Shown piece by piece: positions 16,854 to 46,641 of a stretch of 64,000 nucleotides of DNA. Location: positions 82,894,001 through 82,958,000 of the forward strand of contig OZ038378.1 in assembly GCA_964036045.1 (NCBI GenBank), in the 5' to 3' direction. The translations under genes and the position numbers were made by a program. Below the pieces are notes generated by a model that saw only the letters and a program-made list of their open reading frames with translations, was not told the origin of the DNA and searched no databases. Position 1 is the stretch's first letter. Each line of letters starts with the position of its first letter. The DNA comes from Eutreptiella sp. 'Long Island Sound 2002'. Taxonomy: Eukaryota > Protista > Euglenida.

Positions 16854-17079
16854 ACGCACGATAAAATACCTCTTCCAAGATCTGCTCGATCAAATCCTGC
16901 CGAGCAGACATGTTGCTAATGCTGAAGAGTGTGTTCGAGGGAAGTCTGCAAGTGGCCTTGGCCCCTGCTCACCTCCATGGCATCCCTTCCCGAGCATGGA
17001 ACTTGCGACTGGGCCCCCCCGTGCACAACCCACGACACGTTGAAGTATACAAACAGCGATGTCATGCATTTTGCTTGCA

Positions 17080-20547: not shown

Positions 20548-22098
20548 ACCCCCGAATCAAAAGGGGGAGACGGCCTTGTGCGGATATTGACGGAAACGTT
20601 CGAAAAGCATTTCAGCCATCACCCACAACGTGCGCTCCACACCACCCCCGCAAACACGGATACACACGCAGCAACTTCGCCGGCCAAGACCAAGGAACGG
20701 AAGAGCTCCTCCAGAGCCACTCATCCCCCGAAGACCACAACCAAATGGCGCGCCGCACCGCGGGCAACTCCGAGGGAACCAGCAACCCCGAGCAACCACA
20801 GCTTAGGAGGCCCATAGGGCCCCCGATCGTTTTAGCGAAAAAAGGGTGAAAGGTTGTGTTGTGCATATGGTAAAATAGGGGTGCGAATTTGCATTTTTGC
20901 ATTAGGCTGGGTTTTGCACAGCCCAAACTAGGTGTGTAAGTCATTTTAGCCCCCAATATTACACATTTTAGATCTCTAGGCTCTGCAGAGCCCAGGCTAC
21001 AAGTTATTCCCTTTGTGCTTACCCCCCTTACAACAATTGGCTCATGTATACAGTGGTTAAGTGACCGCGCGACATGGCGCTAGGTTAAGTGGTATACTTT
21101 TCTCGACGCTCTCACATTGTCAGCCTAAACATTGTCTCCGTCTCGGTCAGCAGGAATAGGAATCAAGGATACAAAGCCTGCATACATGACCGGTTGGCTA
21201 TGATGAAAGACGCGTGCCACACCAGGCACCACATCGTCTAGACGGAAGTGCCAAAACCACACCTATATTAGGATTCTCCAACAGCCTGGGCTCTGCAGAC
21301 ACCAGCCTTCATAACCTTGGTACTGAAGGGGTGCTTATTACGGTTTCCCCGTTGGTTGGGCTTTGCAGAGCACAGGCCTACACAATCTCCCATTTTGACC
21401 CCTTTTGTGTGACATAATAGCGCTATGACACTTTGAAACTGATTCTACATATGGTCTGCTAATGTATTTTCCTCTGCCTTTCTGCTGCGTTGCTCTTGTA
21501 TTGTCTTCTACAATGGTCCTACCGTGGTATTGTGTAAGTATCACATTTAGCAGCCATTAAGGAGTACTATACAACAAGCCTTAGACTGTCTGCATGCAGG
21601 TGTAGTTGGAGCTTGGTGAAGTGATGTTTCTATAGTTGTGGTGTGTCTGATTCTATGGGAGTTTGAGGGCACATTGTTTGCAGCATACCCTAATGTATTG
21701 CAGTTGACTTTTATGCATATTCCGCAGTGCGCTTACATTTACTATCTGGTCACATGTCTCATATGTTAAGTACATATAACATGCTATCTTCTTTTTACAA
21801 TAGCCATGGCTGATTTTGCACATGCTAGACGTACGGACGTGGATGTACAGAGTGCCGGCTGGGATACCGAAGGAGATGAGGTTGTAGGACCTGTACCCTT
21901 GCCGGTCCCATCGACCGGTTTAACAGTAGCGCATGTTGCAGCTACGCTCGCCTTGCAAGAGGCGATTATGTTTACGGGGTCAGCACCCCCATCCCGCCCG
22001 CGGTCATCAAAGCCTGCTTGCAAGGACCAACCAACCCCACAAGGCCTCCCTCAATGACCCATTGACTCCAAAGACAATGGAGTTGCTGACGGACAACA

Positions 22099-22503
22099 GT
22101 GGTGGCCAGGCACGATGGTTCGTGCAATACATCTGGGGGTTGTGCACGGTCCCGTTTTCTATTGCGGAACCCAATGCGCAACCCCCTCGTCACATGGCAA
22201 GAAGGGGATCGGATATGCCCATCCCATTTTCTGTCACGCAGCGAGGAGTGGGCTGCATTGATCCTAGATACCCTTAATCTAGAATCAGGTGCCCCTATTG
22301 AGTCGTGCTCCCATCCCCGCATCCCACCTCCCCAGTCACTTCCTCCCCCGGATGCCGACCAACCCACACCTACACAGATGGATCCGCACAACTCCGATTG
22401 CCGGCACATACGGTCCCTTCGACCACTTGTGGAAGTAGACCGCACCGGTGGGAAGTCAAAATACAGCATGTTGCCACCAGTGCACAACACACATGGGAAC
22501 TAG
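22099..22503 (+). pseudogene. Possible THAP-like C2CH zinc-finger remnant
   Basis: SCNTSGGC..W.EGDRICPSHF resembles the THAP CxxHF ending; inter-Cys spacing is shorter than usual. Confidence 0.35.
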
Positions 22504-23644
22504 GCCAAACACTTAATGGATCACATAGTTTTCCGGTATTTGGCCGGTGGCATATCGCATAGTAATGACCACCGTGACCGATACTGACCATGTCTCTGTA
22601 CTGGGACACTACATGGTTGTGGAGACGCAGATGGAGCCACACCCGGAGACAATCCTACATGCACGTGTGGCAACAGTGAGTACCTTGGGGTATGTCGGTT
22701 GTCCGCAACAGCGGCCGTGGGCAACACAGAAGTGCGCTGGGGGCGGGGGTGCACGAGGGAAGTCTTTTGGGGTAGCGCATTATCTCACAAGAGCACCGGG
22801 GCCCTAACGGAATGCCTACCACTGGAGGTGATTGAAGTGCGACTAAAGGCAGGGGGGGGGTGCTTGTATGACCCGATAAATATCACTTTTTGGGACCCCG
22901 GCCTCTGCGGAGCCGAGGCAGCGCCAAATGCTACTTTTACCCCTTCTCGGTTACTTGCCCCTGGCTGGTGGCTCCCCATGTCCCCTCTGTCTATCACACG
23001 GCCCGCCATTACTAATTTCCGGATGCTGGGCTTTGCAGAGCCGAGCTTTTTTCGACAACTACATTTCATGTCTTCTGTGCATGCTACTCGCATTGCAAGC
23101 CCGTACTTCTTTCACCTCACGTCGGAATTCAGCTCCCAGTGTGCACGGTATGTGCTAGTCTACGCCTATTGCTAGTGTCCTGTTCTTGTTACCACCTTTT
23201 CCTGTTGTGCCACCCAGACTGTGTTCTCTCTACCCCTAGTGACCGAAATTAAACCCAATGTTGTTGATATTTGGCCAAAAAGTTACAAATTAATTCCAAG
23301 TTTCAATTTTTTAAAGGGGGGTTAGGGGGGTTGCCGTGAAAATTATGACCCCCATGGGTTGCCTTACGGGCTTGGGTGTCATTTTCACCCAGGGGTTGAT
23401 GGGGCGGTCCTACACATGTGGTTGTTTCAAAATGTTGAAATAGCTCTCGGCTTTAATTCTTGTTTTTAATTTTTGCTTTAAGATTTCAAAAGTTAAGAAT
23501 GAATGAATCGCCAGCATTAATATCAATCTCACAAATATTAACTCTATTCCCCAAATATTAACCCTCCTAAGAATGGCACACCACGTAATGCATCATGGGT
23601 GTGTTCACGCATTTTTTGCATGGCCATTGTGGCCCATTGGCTCC

Positions 23645-23960
23645 CTATGCGGGCCCTAACACCTCATGAGACCCCGTAATGCGGTCCCACGTCTTCGTGG
23701 GTCCGGATGGGGGATTATCGGGGTTAGTGGGCTCGGTGGTAGGGTTCCGGTTCGGGAGGTTGGTCTCTTCGTTTTCGGGGGCGGGGGGTTTGGGCTTTTT
23801 CTTGTCCATCCGGGCCACTTCCCGGTACCGCTTGGCCTCCTCGGCGGTGGGGAAGAAGAGGTGCCAAGGTACCTCGTAGAGGGTGGTGCCGCCCGGGTAT
23901 TCCACTGAAACGGCACCATACTTCCGCCCTTGGATACCACGGACGGTGCCCTTCTCTACC
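23645..23960 (-). pseudogene. Small beta-rich ORF remnant (GTVRGIQGRKYGAVSVEYPGGTTLYEVPW), possibly Tudor/SH3-like
   Basis: Alternating hydrophobic strand pattern only; no diagnostic motif. Confidence 0.3.
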
Positions 23961-24299
23961 CCGGTGGGGTAGGGGACGTGGCCGACCGTCTCGATGATCG
24001 GATCTCCGGGACGGTCGTCCTTCTTCTCGGCCGTTGCACCCTCGGGTGTGTGGGTCTTGGTCGGGGGGGGGGGGGGGTGGCGGTGTTGGGGGGGTTGGTG
24101 GGTTTGGCGGCGGCGACGGCCTTCGTAGGCCGTGCGGTGGTGGTGGGGGTGGGGTTGGGCTTTTTGCCACGGGGGGTCAGCGCGTCGTCGCTCTCCGAGC
24201 CGGACTCGCAGGCGAACCGTTCTTTCGAACTTTTTTTGAGGGGACTTGGGGAGGGGGTTGGGTTACGGCTTGGCATGGGGGGGTTTAGGCGGGGTGGTG

Positions 24300-26560
24300 G
24301 TGGACGCCCGCTCCCCCCTCCTCCTCGTCGTCGATCACCCCACCCCCTCTCTTGCTCCCCCACAACCCCAAGTCCTGCCGCCCCCGCATTCCCCACCTCT
24401 TGCATCAGAGCCCACTCGCTCGGCGAAAAGTGACGCGACGTCACCCAAACGCTGCTCACCACATGCGAGGTCTCCCAATCATGGAGGCCGCGGAAGAGAG
24501 CAGGGCACAAGGGTGGGTCTCGGGCCACGATACGGTGAGGGGACCCTAGGGGTGCTTCTTGGGATCCCTGGGCGTCTCGCCAGGCCACCCGGATGGGCAC
24601 ATCAACCACAATGTGTGGATCCCCTATGCATCCCCCATTCTCCAAGCTACAACCGGTCCCCTTGTCGCGGAGGCGGGCCGCCTCCTCACGGTCCAATGTG
24701 GGACAAGTCACGGCGTTGACCCATGCCGCCCCAACCTGGTCCCACACCCCCATGCATATTGTAAATTGAGCCCACCAAGGGCGAGGTGGACACACCGATG
24801 AGACGCCGGACGAAGGGTTGGTGTCCCCCAATGACCAACCCGCTTGGCACCCAGCGCGACACCCAGTAGAACTTCTTGCAATCTTGTATGGACTGCAATA
24901 GCAACGAAAAAGCACATGGATTGATATTTGCATTAATTTCTCCAGATTCATATCAAGTTAATTTTTCAGGGGGCGTTAATATTAACCAAAGTCTACATAT
25001 TAATCTCGAGAAATTAACGCAAAAATTGACAAACAACAAATGGGCCACAAACCTTGAAGTTGTCGGTTCATATGGTTGCTAGTGCCGCCTCGTTCCTGTC
25101 CCCGCACACGGCCATCCCTATCACCCACAAGTACGCGGGTGTGCGGCCCCGTGCGCCGCGGTTGAGGAGCCCAATGGAGAGATGGGTCCCTTGTGCCGTT
25201 CTCCGGATGTACTTTTGCCATGACACTTCCTCCGGTGGCAGCTGTTCCTCCAGCGTGCCCGCTTTCTGTTTACCCTCCACTCTAACTACCACCCCTCTTT
25301 GTAGCATACTTATCTCATCATCATTATTCGGCCTTCCCTCAAGCACTCACAACACTCCCCAAAGGGAGTCCGTCTCCCTTCCTTCCATTTCCTCCACCAC
25401 CACCATGTCCCCCGTCCGTTCTCTTGCCCCCTCCAGGATATCTTCTCCCCTCTTCCATAACCATGCCGCCCTCCGCTTTTGTTCCGCCTCATCCCCCTCC
25501 ACGCTCCCCGCACCGCACGTCGACGGTCTACTGTCATTGGAGGTCACACTTTGCTCTCTGCCTTGCCCCGCGGGGGTTGCCCGACTGGGGACCCCCCTTC
25601 CGTATTCCACCCTTTTGGTCTCTTCGCGGACTCCTCTTCCTGTCTGGCGATGTCCTTCGCCTCCCTCCTCGTCTCCCTCCCACATCACCGTGTATACCCT
25701 ATGTTTCATCCACAGTATTCCTGCCCTTCTTGGGCCTGCCCCTCCATATTCCTTAATCTTCCTGTAGCCCTCTCCATTTTATGTCTCCCCGTACACCGTC
25801 ACCATGTACCCGTCTCTCGTTGCCCATGCCTCCACTTCCGGTGGGCCTCCCATCCGCCTCCCTTACTTCATCCTCGGTACGTACCCCTGCCAACTAGTTT
25901 CCCCTGGCGGCACCGCTTGCCACCTCTCTTCCACTCTTGTGACGACTTTTTCGCGTATGTCCTTCGCCTCTTCCTCCAACTACCACCGGCGCACGGGTAC
26001 GCATCCTTGCTCACTTTGCAGCTGAGGGGCCTTGTCCAATCGATGGTGTCCATTAGCGATGGACGTGATTGGACGTACCGGGCCCATGAGGGTAGCGGCC
26101 AAGAGCGCCCACTCGCCGGGGGATCGGGGACGGACACGGGCGGCCGTAGGTCAAGGGGGGTTACGAACTCCCTCCACGCGTCCGTGCACGCATCCCGACC
26201 GGGCATGGGCTTGGGGAACGGTGGGCCCGTTGCGGCCGTGTACGCCCACCCCCCGGCGGCTTGTATACTCCATCATGTACTCGAAGCCAAGCTTGGGGAC
26301 GTTCAAGTCCATGAGGAGGCCGATGAGGTCCGGGGCCGGGAAGAGATGGGAGGCATATTGCTTCACCGCCTCCTTTTGCTTGTCGCGAATAATAGAGGGG
26401 TAGCCAGCGTCCGTGGCCTCGGACCATCGGGCCCGAGCCAAGGGAGATGAAGCCACCCACTCACCAAGGAGTGGGGAGACCAAAGGGTCCCGCAAACTCT
26501 TGGCCCCACTCAAACACACGAGCGTCATGTTAAGCACGGCAAGGGTGTCCCGAAAGAAAG
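24300..26560 (-). pseudogene. T2-family transposase copy 2, interrupted by a 788-bp insert and a 160-bp GT-AG intron (24893-25052)
   Basis: ..SRPSLMDTIDWTRPLSCKVSKDAYPCAGGSW|THLSIGLLNRGARGRTPAYLWVIGMAVCGD..ATI(W)TDNFK|SIQDC..IGG(H)QPFVRRL; aligns with 13733-14900. Confidence 0.7.
25190..25977 (-). other. 788-bp insert containing the C-terminal half of an OTU-like cysteine protease
   Basis: SWQGYVPRMK*GRRMGGPPEVEAWATRDGYMVTVY..GILWMKHRVY resembles OTU Y..m...WGG..E..A.....I.VY..HY; flanked by TCC at 25187-25189 and 25975-25977; removal restores GGSWTHL. Confidence 0.7.
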
Positions 26561-28889
26561 GCATAACAAGAGCTATACAAGGGAACATGGTGGTGTGGAG
26601 TGGGGGGGAACGCGGGCAACCGGTGGGGGGGTTGTCCAAGACACCCACCAACACAACATTGGAACATCTCTACTATACCGTTGTGTAACAATGTACCACG
26701 TAACACCCCTAATGGGTCGTCATATGTGCATGGAAAAATGAGGACCAATTACCCAATCAAAAAAATTGAGCGTTAATCTCTTAATATTTGCGGGATTAAT
26801 ATATTAACCGGTTCATGTATTAATAATTGAAATTAACCATATCGACTTTAATTTCGGCCCCTAGGGATGGCACCGGTTTCTATGGCGTTGCATGTGAGCT
26901 ACATGCGGTCTCTTTGTAAAAAAGAATGGCGCAATGGTCGCCAAATGATAATGCCGCCTGTTCTCATGGTGTGGCAGAGGAATTCATACAATTCTGTGCG
27001 GGTCTACGTGTCAGCAAGCGGTCCGGCATTACGCTTGACCGCATTCGCAAGGCGTTGGCACGAAAACAATGGCCGCGTTGGCTAACTAATTTTTCCAAGG
27101 AGACCTATAATGTATGGCTAGGTATGCGTCGAAGCGGCCGTCCCCAGTGCTGAGAGCACCGTCGCTATCAAGCGGGCACACAGGCGCAAGCTGGTGCACG
27201 CAAGTCTCACCAAGCCATGCCGGTTGTCTATTGTAGACCGGGGGGCATTGCAGTTCCGCAAACTGTGGCGTAGCATTGTTCGGCGTGATATTGTGGTGCG
27301 GGTGGACAACTGGTGGCATGCCAGTTTTTGGGCCAATCCATCGAAACCCAATGTCTGTTTAGACGTAACCGCAATAGCGGTGTTGCACACAACCCACCTT
27401 CCCCTTTTTCTTGGTCAGCCGTGTCTGCATGAACTAGTGGACCGGGTTGACGCAGTGGCCATGGCAATTGTTCAACAGCACATAGAGGTGTTTAAGGTGT
27501 GTACTGATATGTGCAATGCACCCATTTCTCGGAGAATCATCTGTGCCCCCCTCGATATTGCTCGGGAGGCTTCTAGAGAGCAACTCTTTTGGAATCCATT
27601 TGGCATATATGAGTCTCGTTCGGGTCAGAGCCAAGAGCTCTTGGATCTCCTCAATATGCTACACAGTACCCAACGGCATGGCATTGTCAGAACCCGATGG
27701 CATTGCTCGTTGATTGCAACATCCACTACCGGGTGCTCAAAATTTTTGTACTCTAGATCCCCCATTGACCGGAATTTTCCGGATTGGTTGCGAGGTATGT
27801 CATTTATTTACGGTGTGTGGCACCCCTACAAACAAGTTTGCAATATCATCTGGAGTAAATTCTTTCCTCCATTTTCGTATATCACCGCTCCCGTGTTCGG
27901 GGCCGGTGCTCGCATATATAACCGCCCCGAACTCTTTGTCATAGAGAAAACTATCGCTGCACTCCTTCTCGGAGCCCCAGACATTCGGGCACAACTTAGG
28001 CAGAAAATTACCCTGTTTGAAGGATGTGCCGACCCAGGAGCCCTAACCACACAGGATGGGTTGCGCATCCTTCGGGACCCGGAATCCCTCCTTAATTATT
28101 ACCTCCTAGCCATCTTTGGAGCGGGACACTTAGTGCGTAATTGCATTTGGGCTGGGCAAGCGGACGGGTTGGGTATAGTAGCCACGTGTGTACTTCGGCG
28201 TTGTTGACCTTGCCGGTCCAGCTGCAGCGAAAATGGACTACGTCCGCACCATATGCTGCGCACTTTTGTACAACACACAATAGCACGACGACACGTCTGG
28301 TGCCGCCCACGTGGAGGAATGTTGTGAGGCTGCTCGTAAAATTGTGGGCACGGTGCACCCCGACAAGCACACACCGGATGAGGCTGGTGACACTTTCAGC
28401 ACCATGCCCCCCTGTCAGTAGGCACGTGCAATAGTGTCTCTCTCCGAAAGTGTGTGTGTAGAGGTGCGCGATAGGGTATGGGCACTCATGCGTGGTGCAG
28501 GACGGGAGGAGCATCGAACTGTGTGATGGTGCTCGCGTCCAGTCACTGTCGTTGAAACAGAAAGAGACACAACGTACGTGTTCCCCGAAAAGGGAACCGG
28601 TGGTACGCTAACTTTTGTGTTTATGAAATATATTCTAAAGCGCTTTCTGCGCACCTTGGTAGGTGGACAAGGGCTCCGTGATGATGCCATGTATTACATA
28701 CGGCAACATATCCCACTTAGGCCACTTGTGAACCGCCGCGAGGTCCGGGCACCTCCCCCCGTGATCAATCTTAATCTATCAAGTCAAATTAACGCAACTC
28801 CTCACTGAGCACAAGAGGTACAGGGCCATCAGAGAGGGCGTCAACATCTACAACATCCCTAGCCAGGATCACAGGTACACCATCATCAG

Positions 28890-29450
28890 TGGGGGCACGC
28901 ACATGACCAATGAACATTGCATTAGCCCGTGGGGGAACAATGTGCTCCATTGCAATTAGTATGAACCCAACCATTTCTACCCCCCCCCCCCCGAGACAGC
29001 CCAATTTGATGTGTACACCCCTGTTATTGCTGTACCCAAATGTCTGGGCTCTGCAGAGCCCAGCTTTATCCGCCACTAAGTTTTCACGGTTTCTATTACC
29101 GGTTCTTGTCACTTCTGGTCCTGCAGAGCTAGCCTGTCACCACTGCCCGATATGTACCCCAATCTGGTCATTTTATGTTCCTTTCTTAGCGCTTTGACTT
29201 GATAGACGTAGACTGATCATGGGGGGGGGGGGTGGCAATGCAGACCCCCCCTCCCCTAGATAGCCAATTTGATGTATCCACTCTTGTTATTGCTGTACCC
29301 CAAACGTCTGGGCTATGCACAGCCCAGCTTTGTCCGACACTAACTTTTGAGGGGTATTACTAGTTCTTGTTAATTTGGGCCGTGCAGAGCTCAGCTCGTC
29401 ACCTCTTCTCGATATGAGCCATCATTTGGTCATTTTTTGTTCCTTTCTTA
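28890..29450 (+). repeat. ~263-bp diverged tandem duplication, each copy with a P1 pair
   Basis: ccaatttgatgt..ttattgctgtaccc..ctgggct at ~29000 and ~29265; P1 offsets 264 and 261. Confidence 0.85.
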
Positions 29451-29989: not shown

Positions 29990-31190
29990 GATGGCAACGC
30001 TGGTGAGACACCAGCGATGGACACAATGGAAGCCGAGAAAGTGGATGCACTGCAGCCAGAGCCCTCCGTAGAGGAAGCTGTACAGGGCAGCACTGTTGCT
30101 GGGGTCAGCTAGGCCAGTCAATCCCCCTCGCAAGTGGGGAACAAGGGTCGTGTCGCAAGGAAGATGGGCATCATCACGCACTCCACAAGCGTCGGGGCCA
30201 TTCAAAACTACGTGGAGGTGAGGAGAGCGAAGGTGCCCCGCAAGTAGGTGAAGATTGATAGGTGCATGGAGTATGGCAATACAGGCTCATTCATTGGGAC
30301 CACGTGGCACAGGTAAAGGAGGATCTACTGGAAAACCCCCTTGATGGCTGGTTGCAGCTTCTGGTCTGCGACGACAAAAGTATGGGAACGTCAAGACACA
30401 ATTCGATCAACGTAAGTGGCTACGTGGTCTGCCCTGTGTGATATGCCATGTTGTTGTATTTAGTGGGAGCCATGTGGGTGATCGGAGGCCAACACGGCGT
30501 TGCCGCGTGTGATGTAATTTGCCAGGATGTGACAGCAAGGACGGGTGAGGACGAGGACTGGATGACCAGCTTTTCGGTGCGCATCCTCAAGTTTGATACA
30601 TCCCTGGAGAGCTGGCTCGACAACACAATAGGGCGCAGCACAGTGGACGTGAGAGCAGTGTACCCGAACTGTTGAACAATTTCCTACAGCTAGCGGCCGA
30701 GGACACACAATGTAAGAAGACATTTGTCACCTTGATGTGTGAGGCAATCGTGGAAGTGGGGCCGACTGCGAAATCCGGTAACACGGAGACAATCCTCAAG
30801 CAAATGAGACCACCTGCCCGTATGGCCTTGACGTGTGGTACCACCTTCACGGCCGCACTCGGCAAGATGGTGGAACGCAAGCATGTGATTGCCCTTTACA
30901 CAATGCGATGCTTTGCTAGAATGCAACCCGGAAATTTGTGGCGTGTATGCAACTCCATGGCCTAGAGTACCGGTAGTACATGCCATACAGTACATGGCCC
31001 GCGGTACCGGGCTTCCAAAAGCTGGCAAAGGAGCTCCGCGCTGGGGAATTGTGGTGGTATCACTTTGGTCATCCCGACATGCCGGTTGAGCGCATCCACC
31101 CTTCACGACGTATGTTTTTGCCTTGTAAGCCCGCTGCCTTTTGTTGTGATTGCGATTCAGTGGGCCACATCGACAGGGAGCCTGGATGAA
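29990..31190 (+). pseudogene. Unassigned cargo ORF remnants
   Basis: Consecutive + ORFs 30448..30675, 30672..30965 and 30980..31189 with globular-like composition; no family recognised. Confidence 0.4.
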
Positions 31191-31199
31191 GTGTAATGA

Positions 31200-32130
31200 C
31201 CGATTTTAGTGTGACACCAAGCAGTTTGAGTCTGCTGGGCTGTGCAGAGCCCAGGGTCCCATGCGATGCAGATTGACTGGATCGAGGGAAACGCTGTGCC
31301 AGTTGCAACCTCCGCAACTTCAGTCCTGATGACTGGTGCAACCTTGCCTAATGAGGTCCAAAGAACCCCCCCAACCCACCCCAAGACACCCCAAAATTTA
31401 CCATTTTGTTCGTGCTAGCCTATGCAGAGCCGAGGTCCAGCACAATAACTAGTTTTAGCCGTCAAGTTACGAATCGGAGAGTACTGGGCTTTGCAGAGCC
31501 CATAATCCCATGCAATGCCAGTTGGCTGGATGTGCAGAGACAATGTGGCTGTTGGAACATCTGCAAGTTCACTCCTGATGACTGGTGCGACCTTGCCTGA
31601 TGATGTCCAAGGACCGCCCCCCCCCCCTCCCCCGAAAACCCCCTAATTCACCATTTTGGGCATGTTGAGCCCTGCAGAGCCCAGGTCCAGCACATTGACC
31701 CATTTCAGCCGTCAAGTCACCAATTATAGAGTACTGGGCCCTATAGAGCCCAGGATCCCATGGCATGCCAATTGACTGGATCTACAAAGATGCTGTGCCT
31801 TTTGAACTGTTGGAAGTTGCGCAAATTCACCCTTGATGATTGCTGCAACCTTTCCTGATGATTTCCAAGGACCCTTCCCCCCCCAAGGACACCCCCTAAT
31901 TCACCGTTTTGGTCATGCTGGGCTCTGCAGAGCCTAGATCCAGCACATTGACCAATTTCAGCCGTCAAGTTACCAATTGGAGAGTACTAGGCCCTGCACA
32001 GCCGAGGATCCCCTGGGATGCCCATTAATTGGATCTACCAAGAAACTGTGCCAGTTTAAGCGTCTGCGACTTCACTGATGTGGACCGGTACAACCTTGCG
32101 TGATGATGTAAGAGGACAACCCCCCCCCCC
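31200..32130 (+). repeat. ~250-bp tandem repeat (about 4 copies) built on P1 pairs; a further copy at ~43090-43330
   Basis: P1 at 31235/31484/31734/31987 and 31415/31665/31918; cattgaccaatttcagccgtca shared with ~43166. Confidence 0.9.
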
Positions 32131-35100: not shown

Positions 35101-35929
35101 CAAGCACAAGTTGCGCATAGCAACTTTTGTTTTTTCCGGATGAGGGGGGGGGGGGGCAGAGGCAGCAATGTCAGTGACGGCTACAGTGACAGTGACACGT
35201 GCTGCCTTCTCACACCCCAGCTTCATGTATTTCTAACCCGCGTGAGCCTCATCAGAAGAAACCAGAGGAAATCATGGCTGACAAAGAGGCATTGCATCGA
35301 GGGCGCCAACACCGGCGAGTAACGCGAACGTGGGCCTTGCTGACGACGGCGGCCACGGTCATTGCCGTGTTACAGGCCGGGAGCGAGGTGGGGCGAAAAG
35401 CCGTGGACCCCACGCTGGCCCGACAACGGCCGGATACGGCTGGATACCCACGATGCTGCACCGCCTTGCAGTGCTAGACGGTGCCCACTGCAGGCATCGC
35501 AATCATGGTCGTGATCATGGCAGCCGCACGGGGCGCGCACCAGGGCGAGGAGTGCGTGGGCGCGGACCGCATCGCTGAAGTTAGCACGGACCAGGGCACC
35601 CAAGAGCCCGAGACAGCCCGGCTTAGCAGCCTTCCTATACCAAGGCACTACGTGGAGACGGATGAGGCAAGCGAGAGTACAATGCCCCACGCGGCCGTCA
35701 CGGGCACAAACAGCCTGACCACGGATGCCCCGCCCCAGCTGTTTCGGGGGATACCCAACACAGTGGCTGGTATAGCCGCGGAGCAGCGGGGCCTTTTGAC
35801 AGGTGGAGGGGGGGAGACCGGGACAATGGGTAGGCTGAGACGGAGGCGGCGGACGACGGCATCAATGAAACTACGGTACAGGGCCGAGTGGAAGCATAGG
35901 ACAGCGCACAGCTGGAGGCACAAGAGCGC

Positions 35930-36160
35930 CGCTGCATCTTCATCAACACGGGGCCAAAAATCATCGCGGTCCACCTGCAGCCGGGGCACACGCTGCTGGA
36001 CCATGTGCGGGACCAAGTAGAAGGAAGGGAGGGAATCGCCACGGAACATCAACGCTTCATGTACACGGGGAAGCAGCTGTTCAAAGGTGACCTCACCTTG
36101 GAGGACTACGGCGTGACAGAGAAGTGCACGCTGCACGTCCTGGGGCGAGTGAGGGGAGGC
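35930..36160 (+). CDS. Ubiquitin-like domain ending RVRGG, fused upstream of Gag
   Basis: VRDQVEGREGIATEHQRFMYTGKQLFKGDLTLEDYGVTEKCTLHVLGRVRGG|M aligns to ubiquitin KEGIP..QQRLIFAGKQL....TL.DY.I....TLHL..RLRGG. Confidence 0.92.
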
Positions 36161-37350
36161 ATGCCGGAATCGGCAGAGATGGCTCATCCAACAGCAAGCG
36201 GCACCGCTTGGCGTTCGAGAACCCGATGGACATTGAGGCAGCGGGCTCAACCCCCTGTACGCGCAGTGGAAGGTGTGGCTCGAGACATGCGCGCCGATCG
36301 CAACCGCCTTCCTCGCGCAGGAGGCCACGGCAGCAGAGCCGCTTGGGTATCGAGAGAGAGCATCACGCCAAGGGCTCAGCGGGAGTGCAGGAGATGGTAC
36401 ACTGGGCGCCACCAAACAAGCCGGATCACGCAGTGCTGCTGGCGTGGGCAGCGCCTATGAGAAGGCCAAGCGATACAAGGTGGACCCGCTGCAGGGGAAG
36501 TGGGTCGAGGCGCCGAAACCGCCGCAAGGGCAGCCGCAGGATCAGCCACGAAATGCGCCACAGGTGGACCCCGTACAAAAGGAAATCGTAGACGTGGAAG
36601 CCCAGCTTGCAAAGCTGACAATGCCTAAGATCCCCCTATGCTCGGAGGAGCAGGTCAAGGCCGTCAGTGACAAGGCCCTGCAGGCAGGGATGGAGACAGA
36701 TTTTGTGGCGGCACTGCAAGCATATGGGGCGACACCAATGGCAAGGCCAGAAGATGCGGCAAAGGCGGGAGAGGTACTACGCGCGGCGGTGTGGACAACC
36801 CTGTACCTGACTGTGACCACACGAGCGCCACGGCTAGCCCCGCAACCCGCGCCCATGGCACCAGTGGCAACTATGGCCCACCAGCAGGTGATCCCCGTCT
36901 TCCAGGCGGTCCCCCAGGTACCACTCCAGCAAATGGCACGCACGCACTTGCCCCACCGGGGGCGTGCTACAGGTGCGGAATGTACGGGCACTGGTCCAGA
37001 GACTGTGTGACGGCGGCCTGCATCCCACAACAGCCCACCACACAAATGCTGCAAGCACAAGCAGCGCAGTGGCCGCAGGCCACACAGGTGCCACAGGCCC
37101 ACACAGCCCAAGCTTCGGTGCCCCCCCCCCCCCGTACGGGGGAGTACACACAGGTGGGGGCTCAGACAATTTACACGGCGCAGACGATGGGGCGACAATA
37201 TGATGCGTCCGGGCCCCCGCCTTACCCCTGCAGCAGATGCCACGGCAACCACTTGAGCTGGCAGCCAGGCCCCGCACGACAGCCAGGCGTGCCACCACAA
37301 CCCCAACCCCAACCACAGCCCCAATCCCAACCCCAGCAGTGGGCTAAGCG
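36161..37350 (+). pseudogene. Gag-like ORF (frameshifted) with a CCHC zinc knuckle
   Basis: CYRCGMYGHWSRDC at 36965-37006 (CX2CX4HX4C); second partial finger CSRCHGNH; Q/P-rich. Confidence 0.85.
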
Positions 37351-37457
37351 CACCGGGAGAGCCAGGAGCCACAGGGGACGACCCTGGCGCAAACGACGGC
37401 ACAGCAATCCAGGTACGCTGTCTGCCCACCTCCCGGGACGCACTCACAGCAAGGGAC

Positions 37458-38867
37458 GTGGCGACAGAACCGGGTGCACTGGCAGTCAGAGCCTGGGCGG
37501 AGGGCACCACACGAAACTGGCGCCGCGACTTGCAACGCGTTGGCAGGACAGACACCGACCTTGACGCCCCCTCGGCACTGGCCAAGCACCTCACCATGCT
37601 GGCAGCGCAAGGACGACGGTGCGCCACGCTTAGAGGTGTTGTATCCAGCGTCCGAATTCGTGAGACCCCGGGCATCTTCGACACGTTGGTTAATCCACTC
37701 CACTGGGCCATATGCAAGGCAGCCGACCGGGCCTTCACACACCCACCACCGCGACCAATCTTGGCCAATGCGCACCCACTGCAGGTACTGGACGCACGTA
37801 CATCGGGGCTGTTTGGCACAGGAGTCGTGGTGCTGGCCTGTCTGGGGACCGCCCTGTGCTGGCGCGTCAGTGAAGTCGCTTCACAGCGGCCAACAGACCT
37901 GGCGACACCCAGGAGCGTGGCCTTCTATGACCAAAAGACCCAACGCAGGTGGATCACGGCACGGCTAAGCCACTGGAGCGAGGCGTGGAGAAAACGCCTG
38001 CACGCCATTGTTCAGCGCAGGCCGGGTTGGATCCCACTATTCGCCTCGACCGCTGAAATCCAGCACGCCCTACGAGTTCTACTCATGGGCACAATGTGGC
38101 ACTCGGTGGCCTGGCACGCCTTCCGCAGGCTAGGGGCAGCGGCACTGGTTGCCACGGGGGCAGCCATGGCAGCCACGGCCCGGTGGGGAAGGTGGAAGCC
38201 CGAACGCCAAGCGGCAGAGTACGCCACACCCCCGCTCGACTGGGAGTGGGAACTCCCTGCCCTGCTCCCCTGGCCAGCACCCGGAGGTGGAGCCACGCTG
38301 CACGCAACGTCGCAGATGGAAATCTGGCCAACGGCAGCCATGGGTGGTGAGCCCTCCGTGAGAGCGAAGGACATAGCGCCCATACCAATCGTCATATCCG
38401 ACTCCAGCGACGACACCGACGACGGGGTATTCGGACCCGCTGTACAGGCTGATGGAGTGTGCGCCACACAACGCCACTGCCAACAGCCAGGAACCAACTC
38501 GGGATCTGCCAGTGGGACGCGCCGCCCCGCAAGTGGAGCGCCGCACAGTACGCGTCTGGATGCGAACCAGGTGTGCCCTCCGCCGAAGACCACCAGCAGG
38601 CCGATGCAAGTGCCAGGGGCAGCCATCCGTCGAGGATACACCGCCCGAGATGAGCCCGCTGGGGGAGCACACAACCCGAGGCAAGTGCGGAGACGCACTG
38701 CTAGCGCACAAGCAGGCAGCAACAGTCAAACTCTCGTCGCGACTCCGAGTGCACGAGCGCAGAGTCATGGACCTGCTACGGCTCTGGGGGCACACGGCCT
38801 CACTCTGGATCTAGGACAAGCCTCTGGCGCCGGAAGTGAAGAGGGCGGACCTACAGCTGCTGCATGA
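37458..38867 (+). CDS. Tyrosine recombinase (469-aa open frame)
   Basis: WRVSEV (R), DQKT (K), WHAFRR (HxxR), GRW, AEYA (Y); helical N-terminal domain; low-complexity C-terminal tail. Confidence 0.9.
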   Translation: MATEPGALAVRAWAEGTTRNWRRDLQRVGRTDTDLDAPSALAKHLTMLAAQGRRCATLRGVVSSVRIRETPGIFDTLVNPLHWAICKAADRAFTHPPPRPILANAHPLQVLDARTSGLFGTGVVVLACLGTALCWRVSEVASQRPTDLATPRSVAFYDQKTQRRWITARLSHWSEAWRKRLHAIVQRRPGWIPLFASTAEIQHALRVLLMGTMWHSVAWHAFRRLGAAALVATGAAMAATARWGRWKPERQAAEYATPPLDWEWELPALLPWPAPGGGATLHATSQMEIWPTAAMGGEPSVRAKDIAPIPIVISDSSDDTDDGVFGPAVQADGVCATQRHCQQPGTNSGSASGTRRPASGAPHSTRLDANQVCPPPKTTSRPMQVPGAAIRRGYTARDEPAGGAHNPRQVRRRTASAQAGSNSQTLVATPSARAQSHGPATALGAHGLTLDLGQASGAGSEEGGPTAAA

Positions 38868-38869
38868 AA

Positions 38870-39930
38870 GTCTGCATGAACTGGTGGTAAGCGGGCCACC
38901 AGAGGACGCCAGTTCGCCGGTGTTGGGTGAGGGCCGCAAAGTGTCATTGCAGCTGGCAGCTAAGGGTCTGGGGAGCGCGTGATCAGTACAAGTGCCGCCA
39001 ACTCTGTGGGAGCAGTGGGGAGACCCGTGCTTCGAATGGGCTGGCCGCAACGCGCCGACCCAGCCCCACTCGCGATGCCCCAAGGCGCAGGCCCTGCTCC
39101 CCGCCCTGGAGCGCCAGGGCGCTGTCGAGGGCACATGGAAGGCACCCAATGCCTCTGTTTTTGCTAACTGGAAGAGCGAGGCTAAGGCCTCCCTCATCCT
39201 CAACATGAAAGCTTTCAACCACAAATACGCCTGCAAGGCCCGGCGCTTAAGGCTGCCCACCGTGGAGGGCCTGGCTGACCTGCTGCGTGCAGTGGGGGGG
39301 GGGGTCGGCGACAAAATTTGACCTTGCAAATGGCAACTGGTCGATCCACCCCCCCCCCCCCCCCACCTGACCAGGGCGATCAGGGTAGAAGTGGGCGAGA
39401 GGCCCTTTGCCATTGTACGTGTGCTCTTCGGTTGGCACCAGGCCCCAGGGCTGGTGCAACACCTCATCGCGACAGTGATTGCCCATGTCGACCCAGGAGG
39501 TGTCGTGGTGGTGCAGTACCTGGATGACATCCTGGTGGTTGGGAAGTAGAAGCAGGAGATCCGCAAGGTTACGCACGATGTGACAAGCGCGCTGAGTAAG
39601 GCAGCTTTCCTGACTGAGCATCCTTGCCCCTATGGCTGAAGTCACGTGGATGGGTAAGACAGTGAACGCAGAGGCAGGCAGAATCCAGCCCAGACCAGTG
39701 GCTGTGGCAGATTGCGTGACCAGGTGGATACGCTTCGCGGTGCCGCTGACGCAAGTATCCCTCAGGAGGCTCTTGGGCCGTCTGGTCCGGCTTGGACGAC
39801 CTGGCAGCACAGCGGCCGCTTTGTGGAGTGGCGCACGAGCTTGGCTGCATTTTGAGCCGCGCTGGGTGCCCAGGGCACCACCGAACCTCTTGGGGGGCAT
39901 TTCGGAGGGTTTGTGCTGCGCGCTGCGTGG
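38870..39930 (+). pseudogene. DIRS-type reverse transcriptase, disrupted
   Basis: LILNMKAFN, PFGWHQAPG, QYLDDILVVG (YLDD at 39517-39528); several stops and frameshifts, one next to a C14 run. Confidence 0.9.
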
Positions 39931-39934
39931 ATAG

Positions 39935-40330
39935 GTGCCTGCCTGCACCCAGCACACGTTCACACGCGCACCCTGCCTGTTTGTGGTTGCCGCGCAAGGC
40001 CCAGGAGGCTACTGGGTAAGCATCCTCGACCATACAGGACCATGGATCAGGCGCTGCCCACGCTGGATAACATCGCAGCAGTCAGCTGAGCTTTGGGGAG
40101 TCCTTGCAGGGTTGGAAAGGGCAAACGGGCCAACAAACCTGTTTGTGGATAACACAGGAGCATTGAGCACCGCACTCCGGGGCAGGGCTGGTATCGCACT
40201 ACCGGAGCGGCAACGCATCATGAGGTGACTAGCGCACAGGTTACGGTGGCAAGGGGGGGGCACTGCAGTTGCACTACGTACCCTCTCCACTGAACCCGGC
40301 AGACCCGGTTTCCCGCTTGTTAGGTCGACA
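39935..40330 (+). pseudogene. DIRS-type RNase H, one in-frame stop
   Basis: QQSAELWG, LFVDNTGA, HYVPSPLNPADPVSR. Confidence 0.88.
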
Positions 40331-43300
40331 GTCGGCCAAGGACATTGTCGTGCAGGCCAGGGCCAGGGAAGCAGTGTTTTTGAACTGCGCACGGACTGCA
40401 TCGTGGGGCAGCATACCTGATAGAGACATGCAGCAATCGGTTATGTGTGGCTCGTACGGATGGCAGCCCAGGCATTGGCGGCATTAATGGCGGCAATTCA
40501 GGCGCGAGGGCAGGTGGGTGTTGGGTGGTGCCTGGGCTTTCAGGGACCCGTGCATCTGTCGTAGTTCGCTACTTTGCCTGTTTTTATGACTCGTTCGCGA
40601 TCGCGAGGGCGCAAGAAGCGAGGCCGTCGCGGTGGCCGCCGACAACGCAAGTTTGTGCATGCGGCGGCGCGCTCTGGCGCTCATCCGTTCTGTGTGTGCG
40701 CATCGTGTGGAAGGCCGCGATGTGTTGCACGTTTTTCTCGGTGGAGCAGCGAGGTTGCTGTTTGCCGTGCTGTTTCCGGACCGTGAAGCGCCGGAAGTGC
40801 CGAGTGCCGCTGTGTGGGACATCGGTGACCGCTTGCGCATTGTCCCGGACCAGGGCGTTACAACCACAGGCATCAGGGATGTAAAGGGACCAGGACGACA
40901 CCATTGTAGGCACCGATGGCGCCTACTGATGGCGGAAGGGCCTGTCTGCCCGTCCCTGAGCACACAACACCGGGAAGGCGGACAGGCCCTTCCGTATTTG
41001 TGGGTGCAAGGGCGCCCTGCCCTCGTGTGGCGAGTGGCTGCCATGGTCGCACCCTGAGTTGGGCCTGGGGCCAACAGAACCACCGGTTGGGACACGGAGT
41101 GCCTGGCGCCGTGGACGTGAGCCGCATCGGCCGGGCCCACTGTCCTTACGCTTTCAGCTTGCGTGCCTCGCGTGCCTGCTACCCTCTTTCCGGTTTGGAC
41201 TGGCACGAGCCTGATTTCGCACGCTTTAATTCAGAATGCCCGGCGCCGTGGACGTGTGCTGCAGTGACCGGGCCCACTGTGTTTGCACTTTTTGTCTGCG
41301 TGCTCCGCGAGTTCGGACAAGCACGCACCTGCTGTTTGCAGGGTGCTGTGTGCTGGGTGCCAGACATGTGCCACGGCTGGGTGTATCAGGCAGGTGCCTC
41401 AGCTACCGACGGCCTCCACTCACCGGTGGCACCCACGGGCATACACATGCATACACGAGCACATATTTTCATTTCCCAGACGCAAATACCAGTTAGTGGA
41501 GTGTTGCAGTGTTGGCTTTGCATGTGTCAGTGCCAGTGTTCAGGGTAAAGGACAGGGCAGTGCAGAGCAGGGCCAGCAAAACACAAGTTGCGCATAGCAA
41601 CTTTTGTTTTGCCCGCTGAGGGGGAGGGGCAGAGGCGGCAATGTCAGTGACGGCTAAAGTGACAGTGACAGACCTCTGATGAGGCTAAGGCAGGTTAGAA
41701 ATACATCAAGCTGGGGTGTGAGCAGGCAACAGGTGGGTAGCATGTACCTCAGGCAATGACACCTCGTCTATTTCGGCGCCATGCGACAAGCGCGAGCATA
41801 TGTATGGCTCACATCATGGCCCAGACAGCCCCAGACGCAAATACCAGTCAGTGGAGTGTTGCATTGTTGGCTTTGCACGTGTCAGTGCCAGTGTTCAGGG
41901 TACAGGACACGGCAGTGCAGAGCAGGGCCAGCAAAACAACAAGAAGGGGAAGGCCAAGCCCCTTGCCAAGGCATGTGCCAAGATGCCATTTGAGCAAACC
42001 ACCCATGGACCTGGAGAATGCCGCGGATTTGGAGAGCATTGACAAGGGCCAGTAGCAAGCAATTGCAGCGCAGATTGAGGATGCGAACAACGTGGGATCT
42101 AGCGGACGAGGAGCCCCCGGGCTGAAGCGGAAACCCAAAGGCCCTGCCGTTACCATCCTTAGTGTGGCTCCGCTTGAGCAAGCTGCCCGGCGCACCCGGA
42201 GTGCAAAGCAGTAGGCTGAATGGGAGGACCTTTCAGTTGTGCTTTTTGGAGAACTGAATCTGATCGTACTGTTGCTGCCCTAACAATGTCTGCTAGTTTG
42301 CTGGGTTATCACACTCTACTTTCACTATCCACTGTGGAACAGGCTACCATAATGACACCCGTTCCCGAAATGCTCGAAACCGGTGTTAGATTTTTTCCTG
42401 TCATAGCACTGCTCTGTGATGCCCTACTGCACAATTTGGTCCTGAGTTCCACTGTGTGCTTTTGTTTTTCAACAGACAGGAACAATCATTTATAAACCAT
42501 AATCTGTACCCTTCAGCCATCTTTTTGGACTGCACGGACATATGACAATGTCCCTATCCCGTGTATTTGCACTTTAGTTCATTGCAGGAGGCACATGCTG
42601 TTTATCTTCGATGTGAGTTTCACCAACAGGGTCCTATGTCTGCTATATTGTTTCCACGTTGCACCTAGGAGTGCAAGATAACACTCTGTTTCACTGTTAA
42701 CCGTGAAACCGTCTCCCTTGCTGATGTCATTTGCTAGTTACAGTATTTTTCATGACAGATATGCAGGTGCACTGTGTGCACAAGTGCCCCACCTGTGTTT
42801 TGTGTTGCTCCTTTACATACACTCGTCTGTCACAAGAGGAACACGTTCGTGGCTGCACCTGACCCACAACCGCACATGGGATGGAATTGAGGGGGGGGTC
42901 TGGGGATGCAGTCCATCACACCTCAAGGCTTCTATGTCAATAGCGGTTTCACTGTTGACATACAAGCATTATGAAACATGGCCCCCACAATGCAGTTTTG
43001 GGGAATTGAATTTTTATGTCAGTATCACTGTTGGCCACACAAGCCAGAAATGAACCTTTTTGTCCGTTTTCGAGGTCCCCGTCGGCACGAGATGTCAAGT
43101 TCGTACCCGTAAGCTTCTTTTACTAATTCTGTCATGCAGGGCTCTGCAGAGCCCAGATGAAGTACATTGACCAATTTCAGCCGTCATATTACCAATTTGA
43201 CAGTTTTGGGCTCTGCAGAGCCCAGGATCCCACGGAATGCACATTTACGCCGTGCCAGATCGCTGTGACTTGGTGGATTGTTGAATCCTATTGCAACGTT

Positions 43301-43439
43301 CCCTCCTCTATGGCTCCTGTGCACACAGGCACTAAGACTGAAGTGGCTCGCGTCTCGAAGAAGTTTCGTCAGCTTGTGGCGAATTTTCGTGCATGACAAA
43401 GGCGGTGAGAGTACAGCGAGAGCACACCGTGGCCACCGC

Positions 43440-44580
43440 TCCAGGTGCTGTTGAAGGGATGTCTGTGGGTCAGCGATCGGGAAGATGTGGAACCACATCA
43501 CAAACTATTATGTGACTAGTCTTGAACCGGGCTGTTGAGGTGTGCGGTGGCGAGGTGGCAAAGCTCAATGTCGGCAAGAGATCAGATTCCGGAGAAATTT
43601 GTGCGTACGAGTGATCGTTGACCACAGCGACCAATGAGATCAATTTACTGAGGTACAATCTCGTCATTGTTGAAGTCCCTCGGCGAGGAGGGCGCATCCC
43701 TGGTGCGCAGATTGTGCGTGTGTTTTCTCAAGGGGTACTTGGCGACTTTCATGGGAACAATGGGGATTTGGTTGCTGTGGAACAACACTTACGCTCCCAA
43801 TTGGAAGATTTGTCCCCAACAGCTTTGCGCATGGGTGTCTACCATCTGGGATGCAGAGAAGAGCCGTATTTGTTCGAGCAGTGAACTCTATTGCTTGTGA
43901 AGACCCATGGGCTGGGCCCTGCAGTGCATTACTTCCTCACACAAAAAGTCCTTCATTGAAGGTCTGTGGGTGGGTTTGGCTTTCCTGTGGTGGTTGGTGA
44001 ATTTGCTGGAGGACCCCAATGACGACTTGGACGACACGCACATGGATGTTGATGCATCGCGCTGTTTGTGGGCACCGTACTACGGCAGCCGCCCCGACCT
44101 CATCAGTCTGGGCTGTGTTCACTTGCCTCTCCCAATGAATTGCGCATGGGGTTTATTAGGTGATGGTCGCAACAATACAGCTAATGTGGTGAATGTGCTG
44201 AAGACAAGCGTCCATAAAGGAGACATGGAGGAGGATGTTGAGTGGCGGAGTGTCATGCACTGGTCAAGCACAGGCCAGCCGCTGTTCCACCAGTTCCCTG
44301 ACCAGGCAGCTGACGCGGACACTAGTGAGTCAGAAGTTGAGGAGATGCGGGATCCAAGTTGAGGAGGTGCGGGATCCGCAAACTCCTAAACCAAAGGGTA
44401 TAACCGATAAACAACAGCAGAAGGAGCGGGAGATGGCTGAGCGCGAGTTGCGGAAGCAAGAGGAGGCACGGGGCGCCAACCTAAAAAGCAGCAGAAGGAG
44501 AAGGCGAAAAGGGCCAAAGAGGACGCACGAGCAAATCGTGACGGGAAAACAGAGGACGATAAATTGGCAAGGGTAACCGC
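43440..44580 (+). pseudogene. Unassigned cargo ORF remnants with a charged, basic C-terminus
   Basis: ORFs 43618..43884, 43907..44362 and 44235..44576; no confident family. Confidence 0.35.
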
Positions 44581-46641
44581 TGCGCCATCCCCATCGTAGA
44601 AAAAAGGGGCATTTAAGGGCTTCCAAGCTACCCTACAACGTGGTGTCCGGGTTGGCTTATCATAGAGCAACGGCAAGAGCAACGGCAAGTAACTGGAGGC
44701 CCCACATACCGTTGGATCATGACTGTCGCTGGACCATACCGGACATGCAACCACGGACACAAACTGTGTGACTGTGCTGCAGTTGTGAGCACCTGATGTG
44801 ACTTAGCCTGTCTTGTGCAGTCCCAAACAGCTGTGGGACAGTGAATGACGGGTCCTGTTTGTCTTTGTACGTGTTTGTGACTCAATTTGACTGTTTTTGA
44901 AATTTGCACTGAGCGGGGCTGTGCAGAGCCCAGCCTGCCAGATTTGCTCGGTTTTACCCCGAATATGACGAATTTCGTACAGCCGGGCTCTGCAGAGCCC
45001 AGCATGCTATTTCAAGCTAATTTGCATGACGCTTGGTTGGACACCGTGTTGCCCTCATCTCAACAGTGTAGTACTGTCCCTGTGTCCCTTTGGTTGTATC
45101 AGCACAACATTGTGCTATGGCATTTCTTTTAGTATGTTCCTCGTTGACACAGTGTATGAACTGTCGAGTTTGTTCACAATTTTGGTGCATATACGGTGCC
45201 AAGTTTGTGTCTCTGAGCCCCAGATCCTTTCTTTACTTGCTATTTATTCACCAATCCATGCGCAGCAAAGTGCAGATGCCATGTGTACCATTGATTGGGT
45301 CCTGACATCTTGGGTTACCTGTTCGTGGGCCCTACAGAGCTCAGGGGAATGTGTCCGTCGTTTTGAGTATACCAGGTATGCCCATAGTTCAATCTGCACT
45401 GTGTATTTAGGGCACATGTTTGCGTTTTTTTTTTGCTGAGCCACATTACATTTTCCGCTGTCATGTATGCCCCAATTTCATTGATATGTCTTGCCAGTGT
45501 TTTTGGATTTTCCAACGGTTGACAATGCGTATGTTGGGCAGTGCTTTGCCACTGTCCACTGTGCGATGATTCAGTTTTTGGTGCCATTTGTGACCCGTTT
45601 TCGTTGGTGTCAACCATTTATTGATTATTGCACCTTTGCTCGGGATTAAGAAAGGGGAACCCTCTTTGTGTGTCCATGTGTTAGTACGTGCTTCTGAACG
45701 ACATCTGGGGACACGTCAGTCTGTAGTCTGTACAACATCCAATTCCAGAGTTGTGACGGACCTCGTACAACTCACGTACCAATTTTTACACTTTTTGTGC
45801 TTTCCTTTGTATGTGTTTGTGCTTTATACTCGTCAACTAGTGTGTATGTAGGTTCCATGCCGTGTCTATGACTGGTGCTCTGGTGGTCTATCGCTTATGT
45901 GGGGACTTAAATTTCTGGGGGGGGGGGGCACACAGTGCGATCCTTATGGTATCCATTACCACACCGGTGGTCCGCCGTGTTTATTAATAGTGTAATTCAT
46001 GTGTGCTATTTGTTGTTTCTATCGAGCTGGGCTCTGCAGAGCCCAACCAGTAGGAATTCCCTATTTCAGGCCCTGTTACTACCTGTTTGCCTGTACATTG
46101 TTGTGTTGGTGTACAACCTTGTACTATTTCCCCTGTTTTTAGTGAAAGTCCTGTTTCTCGGCTCTGCAAAGCCCAGCCTTTGAAAAATGCTACTTTGCAC
46201 CCTCCTTTCATACATGTGCCGCTCTCGGTTGTTATAGGGTACACCTTCTTGACAGGCGGTCCATGTAAGGTCATCATTGCCGTCATAATACTACTACTAG
46301 TAAGAGAACCGCAGCACGTGCTGTTGACAAATACGTGCTCCATTTGTGATATCAGACCGTGAAACATAGTTTTATGGCGGGGCTGGTCCATTTTCCGTAT
46401 TTGAGACGTCCAAAATGGGGAAAAACAGTGGATGCGCTCGTATGCTGTGGGGGCCCAAAATGGTGCTTTTTTGCTGCGTCGCACCCCTAATTTGCGTGTC
46501 ATTGCTCCTCCCCATACACCCTGGCTGGGAACAGCCCCACCATTACGCTTGACTATGCAGCAGAGATGCTAGGCTCTATTCACGACATTTTTTTTTTTCT
46601 TCAAAAAACGATAGGGGGCACTATGTGCCTCCTAAGCACAG

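Follow-up and report, generated by a model that had tools for sequence, protein, structure and literature searches.

Introduction

Eukaryotic cut-and-paste transposons are grouped into about two dozen superfamilies. New superfamilies seldom come to light, and with each comes a new transposase chemistry or mode of DNA recognition; V(D)J recombination itself arose from the group that holds hAT, P, Transib and RAG. Within this group, P elements leave an 8-bp target-site duplication (TSD). Transib elements duplicate 5 bp, and in 2005 they were described as the only superfamily to do so; their termini carry an invariant CAC in the heptamer CACAATG/CACAGTG (PMC1131882). In hAT elements, the third terminal base is always G (PMC1131882, Figure S7 legend), and a 5-bp TSD has also been described for the hAT5 subgroup (PMC12730594). 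The CMCT clade is marked by CA..TG termini and common CxxC/HxxxH motifs, and CACTA elements by CAC...GTG ends with 3-bp TSDs (PMC12730594). Finally, a C/DxxH motif is common to hAT, P, Kolobok, MuDR and Dada transposases (PMC10045372). The element compared here with these systems occupies positions 20802-46636 of a 64,000-nucleotide stretch of DNA, termed the window, from the euglenid Eutreptiella sp. 'Long Island Sound 2002' (GenBank assembly GCA_964036045.1, contig OZ038378.1, positions 82,894,001 to 82,958,000). An earlier note, made from the window's letters, had described a 25.8-kb cargo-carrying DNA transposon. It is read here as a decayed, nested copy of an autonomous two-gene DNA transposon that bears terminal inverted repeats (TIRs) and has a canonical length of about 11.2 kb, a reading to which a probability of roughly 85% is assigned, and for which the boundaries, duplications, repeated family, nested inserts and conservation of both genes can be seen directly in the DNA.

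Termini and Target-Site Duplications

The left TIR of the window element is 32 nt long (20802-20833, + strand), starts with CTTAGG and matches the right TIR (46605-46636, - strand, ending in CCTAAG) at 29 of 32 positions. Outside these arms, the letters CACAG are found at both 20797-20801 and 46637-46641, so that the left end reads cacag followed by CTTAGGAGGCCCATAGGGCCCCC and the right end reads CACTATGTGCCTCCTAAG followed by cacag. The termini and duplication proposed in the earlier note were thereby confirmed, the element running precisely from 20802 to 46636. In the 64-kb window, a 28-nt terminus consensus is found at these two ends only, relative to an expectation of 0.00 from shuffled sequences. 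Restoration of the flanking reading frame, also listed as defining the element, turned out to be a weak argument, because two of the three + frames stay open, for 178 and 195 codons, where the flank is rejoined, and this flank is of low complexity with few stops.

The element belongs to a mobile family with several copies. A database search with the product of window reading frame 27122-28204 returned 66 close relatives with 52-87% identity. These lie on long contigs listed by ENA (84 kb to 7.8 Mb), except for the window's own product (P0001) and one sequence on a short Logan contig (P0031), and each long contig that was fetched with a relative belongs to a single assembly, ERZ25074135. The DNA around five relatives (L001, L002, L004, L005 and L006) served as the comparison set for the window's family, here called family A. 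The left terminus of the window element is present in L001, L002, L005 and L006, and two of these loci hold complete copies: L002 at 7483-18716 (11,234 bp, with ATGTA on both sides) and L006 at 7438-18104 (10,667 bp, with AAAAT on both sides). The window copy is 84-86% identical to these two, whose identity to one another is about 90%.

A second family from the same assembly, family B, is 7.8 kb long and encodes a transposase 35% identical to that of family A. Its termini are CTTAGACTGCTGAGA...TCTCAGCAGTCTAAG, starting with CTTAGA rather than the CTTAGG of family A, and its copies lie at L007 9100-16917, L008 9103-16911, L014 9102-16950 and L015 from 9099 onward. The first three are flanked by ATATT, ATTCA and ATTGG, respectively. 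Counting the window and the five others from families A and B, all six complete insertions possess paired CTTAG/CTAAG ends and a 5-bp duplication of their own; the duplications differ from copy to copy, and there is no fixed target sequence. Just outside CTTAG, the six copies have G, A, T, T, A and G, a variation that rules out the alternative of GCTTAGG ends with a 3-bp ACA duplication that had been offered alongside. Families A and B share one grammar, namely CTTAG...CTAAG ends, a 5-bp duplication, two genes on the same strand and a family-specific palindrome.

These observations bear on the simplest alternative, that the inverted termini and CACAG arose by coincidence, or mark where a segmental duplication ends, and do not delimit a mobile element. 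In its favor, no empty allele of the window insertion was recovered, and no paralogue of its flank was present among the fetched loci. On the other hand, the terminus pattern is not expected by chance, the same 11 kb with the same ends recurs elsewhere in unrelated flanks, each time with its own 5-bp duplication, and family B repeats the grammar, leaving this alternative with a practically negligible probability.

Nested Inserts and True Size

The window copy is 25.8 kb long because two other elements, one of 3.6 kb and one compound and of 11.0 kb, landed inside it. These sizes follow from the sister copies, every one of which joins 23232 to 26867 and 32144 to 43114. Nested insert 1 (23233-26866; 3,634 bp) is an unrelated element located directly 5' of the transposase start codon (ATG); it is bounded by its own inverted ends of about 20 nt (CCCTAG.G.CCGAAATTAAA) and is absent from sister copies, with L002, L005 and L006 unbroken across the 23232/26867 junction. 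Its frames are proline-rich and of low complexity. They contain no Pfam domain, and the insert has no relative in the other fetched loci.

Nested insert 2 (32145-43113; 10,969 bp) landed in a tandem array of about 250-bp units that belongs to the element itself, and L002, L004 and L006 join 32144 to 43114 without it. Its inverted ends are imperfect (core GGGTACGAAC.TGACATC) and accompanied by a probable CTT duplication. Its CTTAC-like ends raised the idea of a distant relative from the same superfamily, which was rejected as the flanks fit a 3-bp and not a 5-bp duplication. Inside the insert lies a GC-rich block (about 63%) of about 6.5 kb, with approximate limits at 35102 and 41943 drawn from composition and boundary repeats. 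It holds a ubiquitin-like frame (35900-36457) that ends in ...RGG (Pfam ubiquitin, E 9.4e-13) and, downstream, a CCHC zinc-knuckle frame (36671-37561; Pfam zf-CCHC, E 2.5e-4). No reverse transcriptase or integrase was found near these two frames, and the arrangement may represent a host gene that was captured or retroposed, or an unfamiliar element. The repeats at the GC-rich block have an odd layout and include a 96-nt direct repeat (35102-35197 and 41579-41670), followed immediately by a 61-nt segment in opposite orientations at its two locations (35196-35256 versus 41675-41735), and a 113-nt direct repeat (41475-41587 and 41830-41943).

With both inserts removed, the element's own DNA therefore amounts to 11,232 bp, close to the 11,234 and 10,667 bp of its sisters, and not to the roughly 15.4 kb given previously. 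Of the two insert sizes in that estimate, 3.6 kb was accurate, while 6.8 kb gives way to the 10,969 bp delimited by the sister junctions. The notion of a giant cargo carrier, with about 15 kb of its own sequence and passenger genes besides the transposase, owes its appeal to the 25.8-kb length and the many reading frames. It is nevertheless highly improbable: sister copies of 10.7-11.2 kb lack both 23233-26866 and 32145-43113, both extra blocks have inverted ends of their own, the ubiquitin-like and CCHC frames sit in nested insert 2 and not in the element's own DNA, and the conserved coding regions that remain are those of the transposase and a second gene, ORF2 (open reading frame 2). In other words, the excess consists of nested mobile elements, and the rest consists of repeats plus the two genes common to all three families (the third, family C, is described below), such that the description as cargo-carrying had to be dropped. 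Giant elements of the Polinton/Maverick or Starship type were also considered and rejected; no polymerase, integrase or tyrosine recombinase is present, and the canonical size is 11 kb.

The Transposase and Its Wider Family

Intact transposases of these elements are about 690 amino acids (aa) long. When 1.84 billion cluster representatives (50% identity) were searched with a profile, 939 relatives emerged at E ≤ 0.001, 174 of them at E ≤ 1e-30. Many are 700-840 aa long, those clusters that were looked up lie on short ENA, JGI metagenome and Logan contigs, and the only name among all 939 is "hypothetical protein". A large unnamed protein family, widespread in environmental eukaryote sequence, is hereby tied to a defined mobile element, and its annotation becomes possible through known ends, target duplication and gene content.

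Other sources yielded little. In Pfam, neither the transposase nor 40 diverse relatives matched any transposase model at E ≤ 1, and among about 50 frames from the element and its inserts, none in the element's own DNA contained a domain of the transposase, THAP, reverse-transcriptase or integrase type. NCBIfam contained no match to the transposase, searches of PDB sequences (phmmer and profile search) returned nothing relevant to it, the BFVD viral fold library gave noise only, and Rfam had no match in the window. Motif-seeded scans, which find only sequences bearing the seed motif, produced no relative in the 185,579 prokaryotic species genomes of GTDB or in IMG/VR, and a scan of JGI metagenomes returned just two short loci without element ends.

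Structure prediction was more informative. AlphaFold2 models were built on 40-42 sequences, with a 701-aa relative (P0067) as the reference for residue numbering. The predicted local distance difference test (pLDDT) score was 86.7 for full-length P0067 and 93.1 for its core (residues 120-525; predicted template modelling score 0.92). The core model has the strand order of an RNase-H fold, and in the full-length model the first 120 residues form helices. In a Foldseek comparison to the PDB, the top 18 matches were all P-element transposase, Hermes, HzTransib or RAG1, the best being P-element transposase (probability 1.00, template modelling (TM) score about 0.41). Within the 42 aligned sequences, D150 on strand beta-1 is conserved in 41, D285 just after beta-4 is invariant, and so are the acidic columns D235 and E362. 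An invariant W320-H321 pair opens the helix after beta-5, and an all-helical region follows that leads to the nearly invariant E490, E491 and E494. The model points to D150 and D285 as the probable first two members of the catalytic triad, and it predicts a DDE enzyme whose RNase-H fold holds an all-helical insertion domain. The DDE-like transposase postulated in the earlier note is in agreement with this fold, with its DDE transposase and RAG1 neighbors, and with the conserved acidic residues.

ORF2 and Selection on Both Genes

The second gene, ORF2, is kept in families A, B and C, downstream of the transposase and on the same strand. In families A and B, its protein has a tail rich in lysine and glutamate. 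In family A, it is split by the tandem array of 250-bp units (L002 13553-14254 and 15487-16773), and in family B an open part of 416 codons recurs in 29 near-identical cluster members. No Pfam, PDB or distant database match to ORF2 was obtained, the database search returning its own cluster only. For family B, the ratio of nonsynonymous to synonymous substitution rates (dN/dS) was 0.22-0.31 in eight of nine pairwise comparisons of transposase and ORF2, with 0.71 for the transposases of L007 and L015 as the remaining value. These low ratios indicate that both family B genes are under purifying selection.

The family B copies that were compared are 91-96% identical, their transposase frames (687-697 aa) are intact, as is ORF2 in L007, L008 and L014, and the corresponding clusters of near-identical proteins number 23 and 29 members. 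Judging from its sequences, family B is probably active and looks to have been so recently, and its intact copies allow activity tests and a structure that could be compared with those of hAT, P, Transib and RAG. The L014 copy adjoins an intron-containing DEAD-box helicase gene.

Family C, which stems from other samples, is represented by a 12.3-kb contig (L009, 1-12337; an ENA scaffold of ERZ23486340) with a transposase of 706 aa. Ten contigs, spread over five or more assemblies or metagenomes, carry the identical protein (P0257); of these contigs, L009-L013 were fetched. The L009 contig is packed with palindromes built on GCGATCGC, an octamer best known as a highly iterated palindrome of cyanobacteria. 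Its coding density is nevertheless low, and the prokaryotic genome scans gave no relative.

Comparison with Known Superfamilies

The best structural neighbor of the transposase is the P-element/THAP9 group (PDB 6p5a and 6pe2), in which the RNase-H fold is likewise interrupted by a helical insertion domain. Sequence identity to P-element transposase is only 8-9%, however, without a Pfam match, and the duplication is 5 bp here as opposed to 8 bp there. Members of the P superfamily also possess an N-terminal THAP finger, in contrast to the all-helical N-terminus of the present protein; the THAP-like finger suspected in the earlier note did not materialize, as no C2CH pattern occurs in six frames of the element's own DNA and the Pfam scans gave no THAP match. 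A BED finger was also absent from the Pfam scans.

Transib shares the 5-bp duplication, seen here in six of six copies, and HzTransib has the lowest E-value in the Foldseek comparison, where RAG1 is also among the matches. ProtoRAG resembles the present elements in having two genes, although the likeness is a resemblance only. In contrast, Transib termini start with CAC and those of families A and B with CTTAGG and CTTAGA, Transib elements measure a few kb as opposed to 8-11 kb here, and 40 members show no sequence similarity to RAG1 models. Cysteine or histidine columns conserved at 50% or more in the 42 aligned sequences are limited to H275, H289, H321, C428 and H480, and these do not form the CxxC/HxxxH pairs of the CMCT clade.

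With hAT elements, the present families have in common short inverted ends and repeated subterminal motifs, and Hermes is a consistent structural match. The canonical hAT duplication is 8 bp, compared with 5 bp here and in the hAT5 subgroup; the third terminal base, G in hAT, is T in both families; and none of the 40 members contains a hAT dimerisation, BED or DUF659 domain (Pfam, E ≤ 1). The C/DxxH motif, located between the second aspartate and the glutamate in hAT, P and other superfamilies, finds just half a match here, of the form GxWH, with the invariant H321 36 residues after D285 and glycine at the C/D position in 95% of sequences. Finally, CACTA/EnSpm elements are similar in their 8-11 kb length, two genes and short repeated subterminal motifs, but their CAC...GTG ends, 3-bp duplication, CxxC/HxxxH motifs and Pfam model are all absent here.

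For each of hAT, Transib, P and CACTA, the element accordingly lacks defining features that were tested, which bears out the earlier statement that it fits no superfamily that could be named. A literature search on superfamilies with 5-bp duplications, on CTTAG termini and on the newly named lineages Lanisha, ESTA and KDZ provided no fitting description within a scope that did not extend to Repbase and Dfam. It is an even bet that these elements constitute an undescribed, superfamily-level lineage of eukaryotic DDE transposons, judged outside Repbase and Dfam, with a transposase whose model suggests the hAT/P/Transib/RAG1 structural class without the sequence signatures of those families. If so, it would be a second two-gene lineage with 5-bp duplications beside Transib/ProtoRAG, and it would bear on the origin of RAG-like recombinases and their partner proteins.

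A competing explanation, held more tentatively, is that a divergent member of a named superfamily has escaped the Pfam models, the gap being one of databases only. Candidates would be a hAT5-like lineage, a Transib/CMCT outlier, a relative of P or Kolobok, or a superfamily catalogued in Repbase. Such an assignment would account for structural neighbors that are exclusively P-element, Hermes, Transib and RAG1, for a duplication of the length known from Transib/RAG and hAT5 (PMC1131882; PMC12730594), and for an invariant histidine about 35 residues past the second aspartate that recalls C/DxxH (PMC10045372); the exclusion of Repbase and Dfam from the search also leaves room for it. It has to contend with 40 diverse members that lack a Pfam transposase match at E ≤ 1, with CTT termini that are neither CAC as in Transib nor xxG as in hAT (PMC1131882), with the lack of conserved columns for the CMCT signature CxxC/HxxxH (PMC12730594), with glycine in place of C/D, and with the missing THAP and BED fingers. 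Structural matches at an E-value of about 3e-3 and 8-12% identity support a fold class and a function, not membership in the matched families.

Palindromes and a Proposed Mode of Transposition

A 16-bp palindrome, GGGCTCTGCAGAGCCC, occurs 16 times in the window copy (20978-46174; up to two mismatches), starting at 20978, 21288, 21358, 23028, 29046, 29310, 31237, 31486, 31667, 31920, 43139, 43208, 44916, 44985, 46029 and 46159. All of these copies are in the element's own DNA, and none is found in the flanks or the nested inserts. Two palindrome families had been reported, only one of which resides in the element's own DNA. L002 and L006 have 22 copies each, often paired 69-70 bp apart, and distances of 109, 488 and 558 from the left end and about 470 and 600 from the right end are conserved, with additional copies between the genes. 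The palindrome of family B is a different one (core TCAGCGCAAATGCGCTGA) at positions matching those of family A, and that of family C, TTTAGGGGCGATCGCCCCTAAA, matches in placement as well. Dispersed, family-specific palindromes are, therefore, part of the architecture common to all three families. The terminal repeat's inner motif was also considered as an internal repeated binding site and discarded, since it is not repeated inside the element.

A plausible sequence of events is that the transposase would bind the inverted ends and excise the element by cut-and-paste, after which the element would be joined to target cuts staggered by 5 bp. A hairpin intermediate is possible, by analogy with hAT, Transib and RAG. 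The palindromes may be binding sites for a dimeric protein, the candidates being ORF2 and the transposase with its helical N-terminal domain.

Several points weigh against the interpretation of these elements as two-gene DDE transposons. The choice of cut-and-paste over a copy mechanism is inferred, because neither an excision footprint nor an empty allele nor a polymorphic insertion came to light. The Foldseek matches are weak in absolute terms (TM 0.26-0.42, best E about 3e-3, identity 8-12%), and the searches found no sequence-level link to any characterised transposase. For the third catalytic residue, the model offers either E362 or one of E490, E491 and E494 as candidates. The palindromes are putative protein-binding sites, and ORF2 is one candidate for the protein that would bind them.

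Decay of the Window Copy

The window copy is old and inactive, with genes broken by frameshifts, two small inversions and insertions. A tblastn search with P0004 and P0010, two sister proteins, traces its transposase to 26867-28802 (+ strand). Close to the 5' end, the frame is shifted two or more times, and the longest part left open (27122-28204; 361 codons) is the sole convincing frame in the element's own DNA.

Of the two inversions, the first is an internal segment of about 383 bp (22484-22866) that is inverted relative to five sister copies. Specifically, in blastn alignments window 22480-22869 runs in reverse to L006 9630-9243 with neighboring blocks in the forward direction, and the same is seen with L001, L002, L004 and L005. 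The second (28752-28992, - strand) covers the last ~75 transposase codons and was detected by both blastn and tblastn; it is reverse to L006 12110-11880 and to other copies, and residues 548-622 of P0004 map to window 28992-28768 on the minus strand. Here the window orientation is the derived one, because the frame of L001 runs straight through. This inversion, together with the 5' frameshifts, makes the window transposase a pseudogene. No flanking inverted repeats that would explain the two inversions were identified.

The remains of ORF2 are also in two pieces on the + strand. A decayed 5' part (30448-31154; tblastn of L002 13553-14254) is homologous to ORF2 of families B and C, and a frameshifted 3' part with a lysine/glutamate-rich tail (43390-44689; tblastn of L002 15487-16773) is homologous to that of family B. 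They are separated by the tandem array of about 250-bp units, which is also found in L001, L002, L004 and L006. Its left part lies at 31126-32144 and its remainder, to the right of nested insert 2, at 43114-43248, the two being continuous in sister copies. Dead, nested and without cargo, the window copy is of less interest than the family to which it belongs.

Surroundings of the Element

The element sits in a repeat-rich region. Its flanks hold decayed retroelements (1028-1921 and 11072-11836), with a domain of reverse transcriptase (E 4.6e-10) and a weak match to RNase H. Further downstream, a satellite array at 49100-57500 comprises about 160 units with a period of 51-54 bp (mostly 52 bp) and has internal inverted blocks, for example, 54340-54794 versus 55383-55837. 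Finally, a 273-nt inverted repeat joins the two sides of the window (10696-10968 versus 62457-62729).

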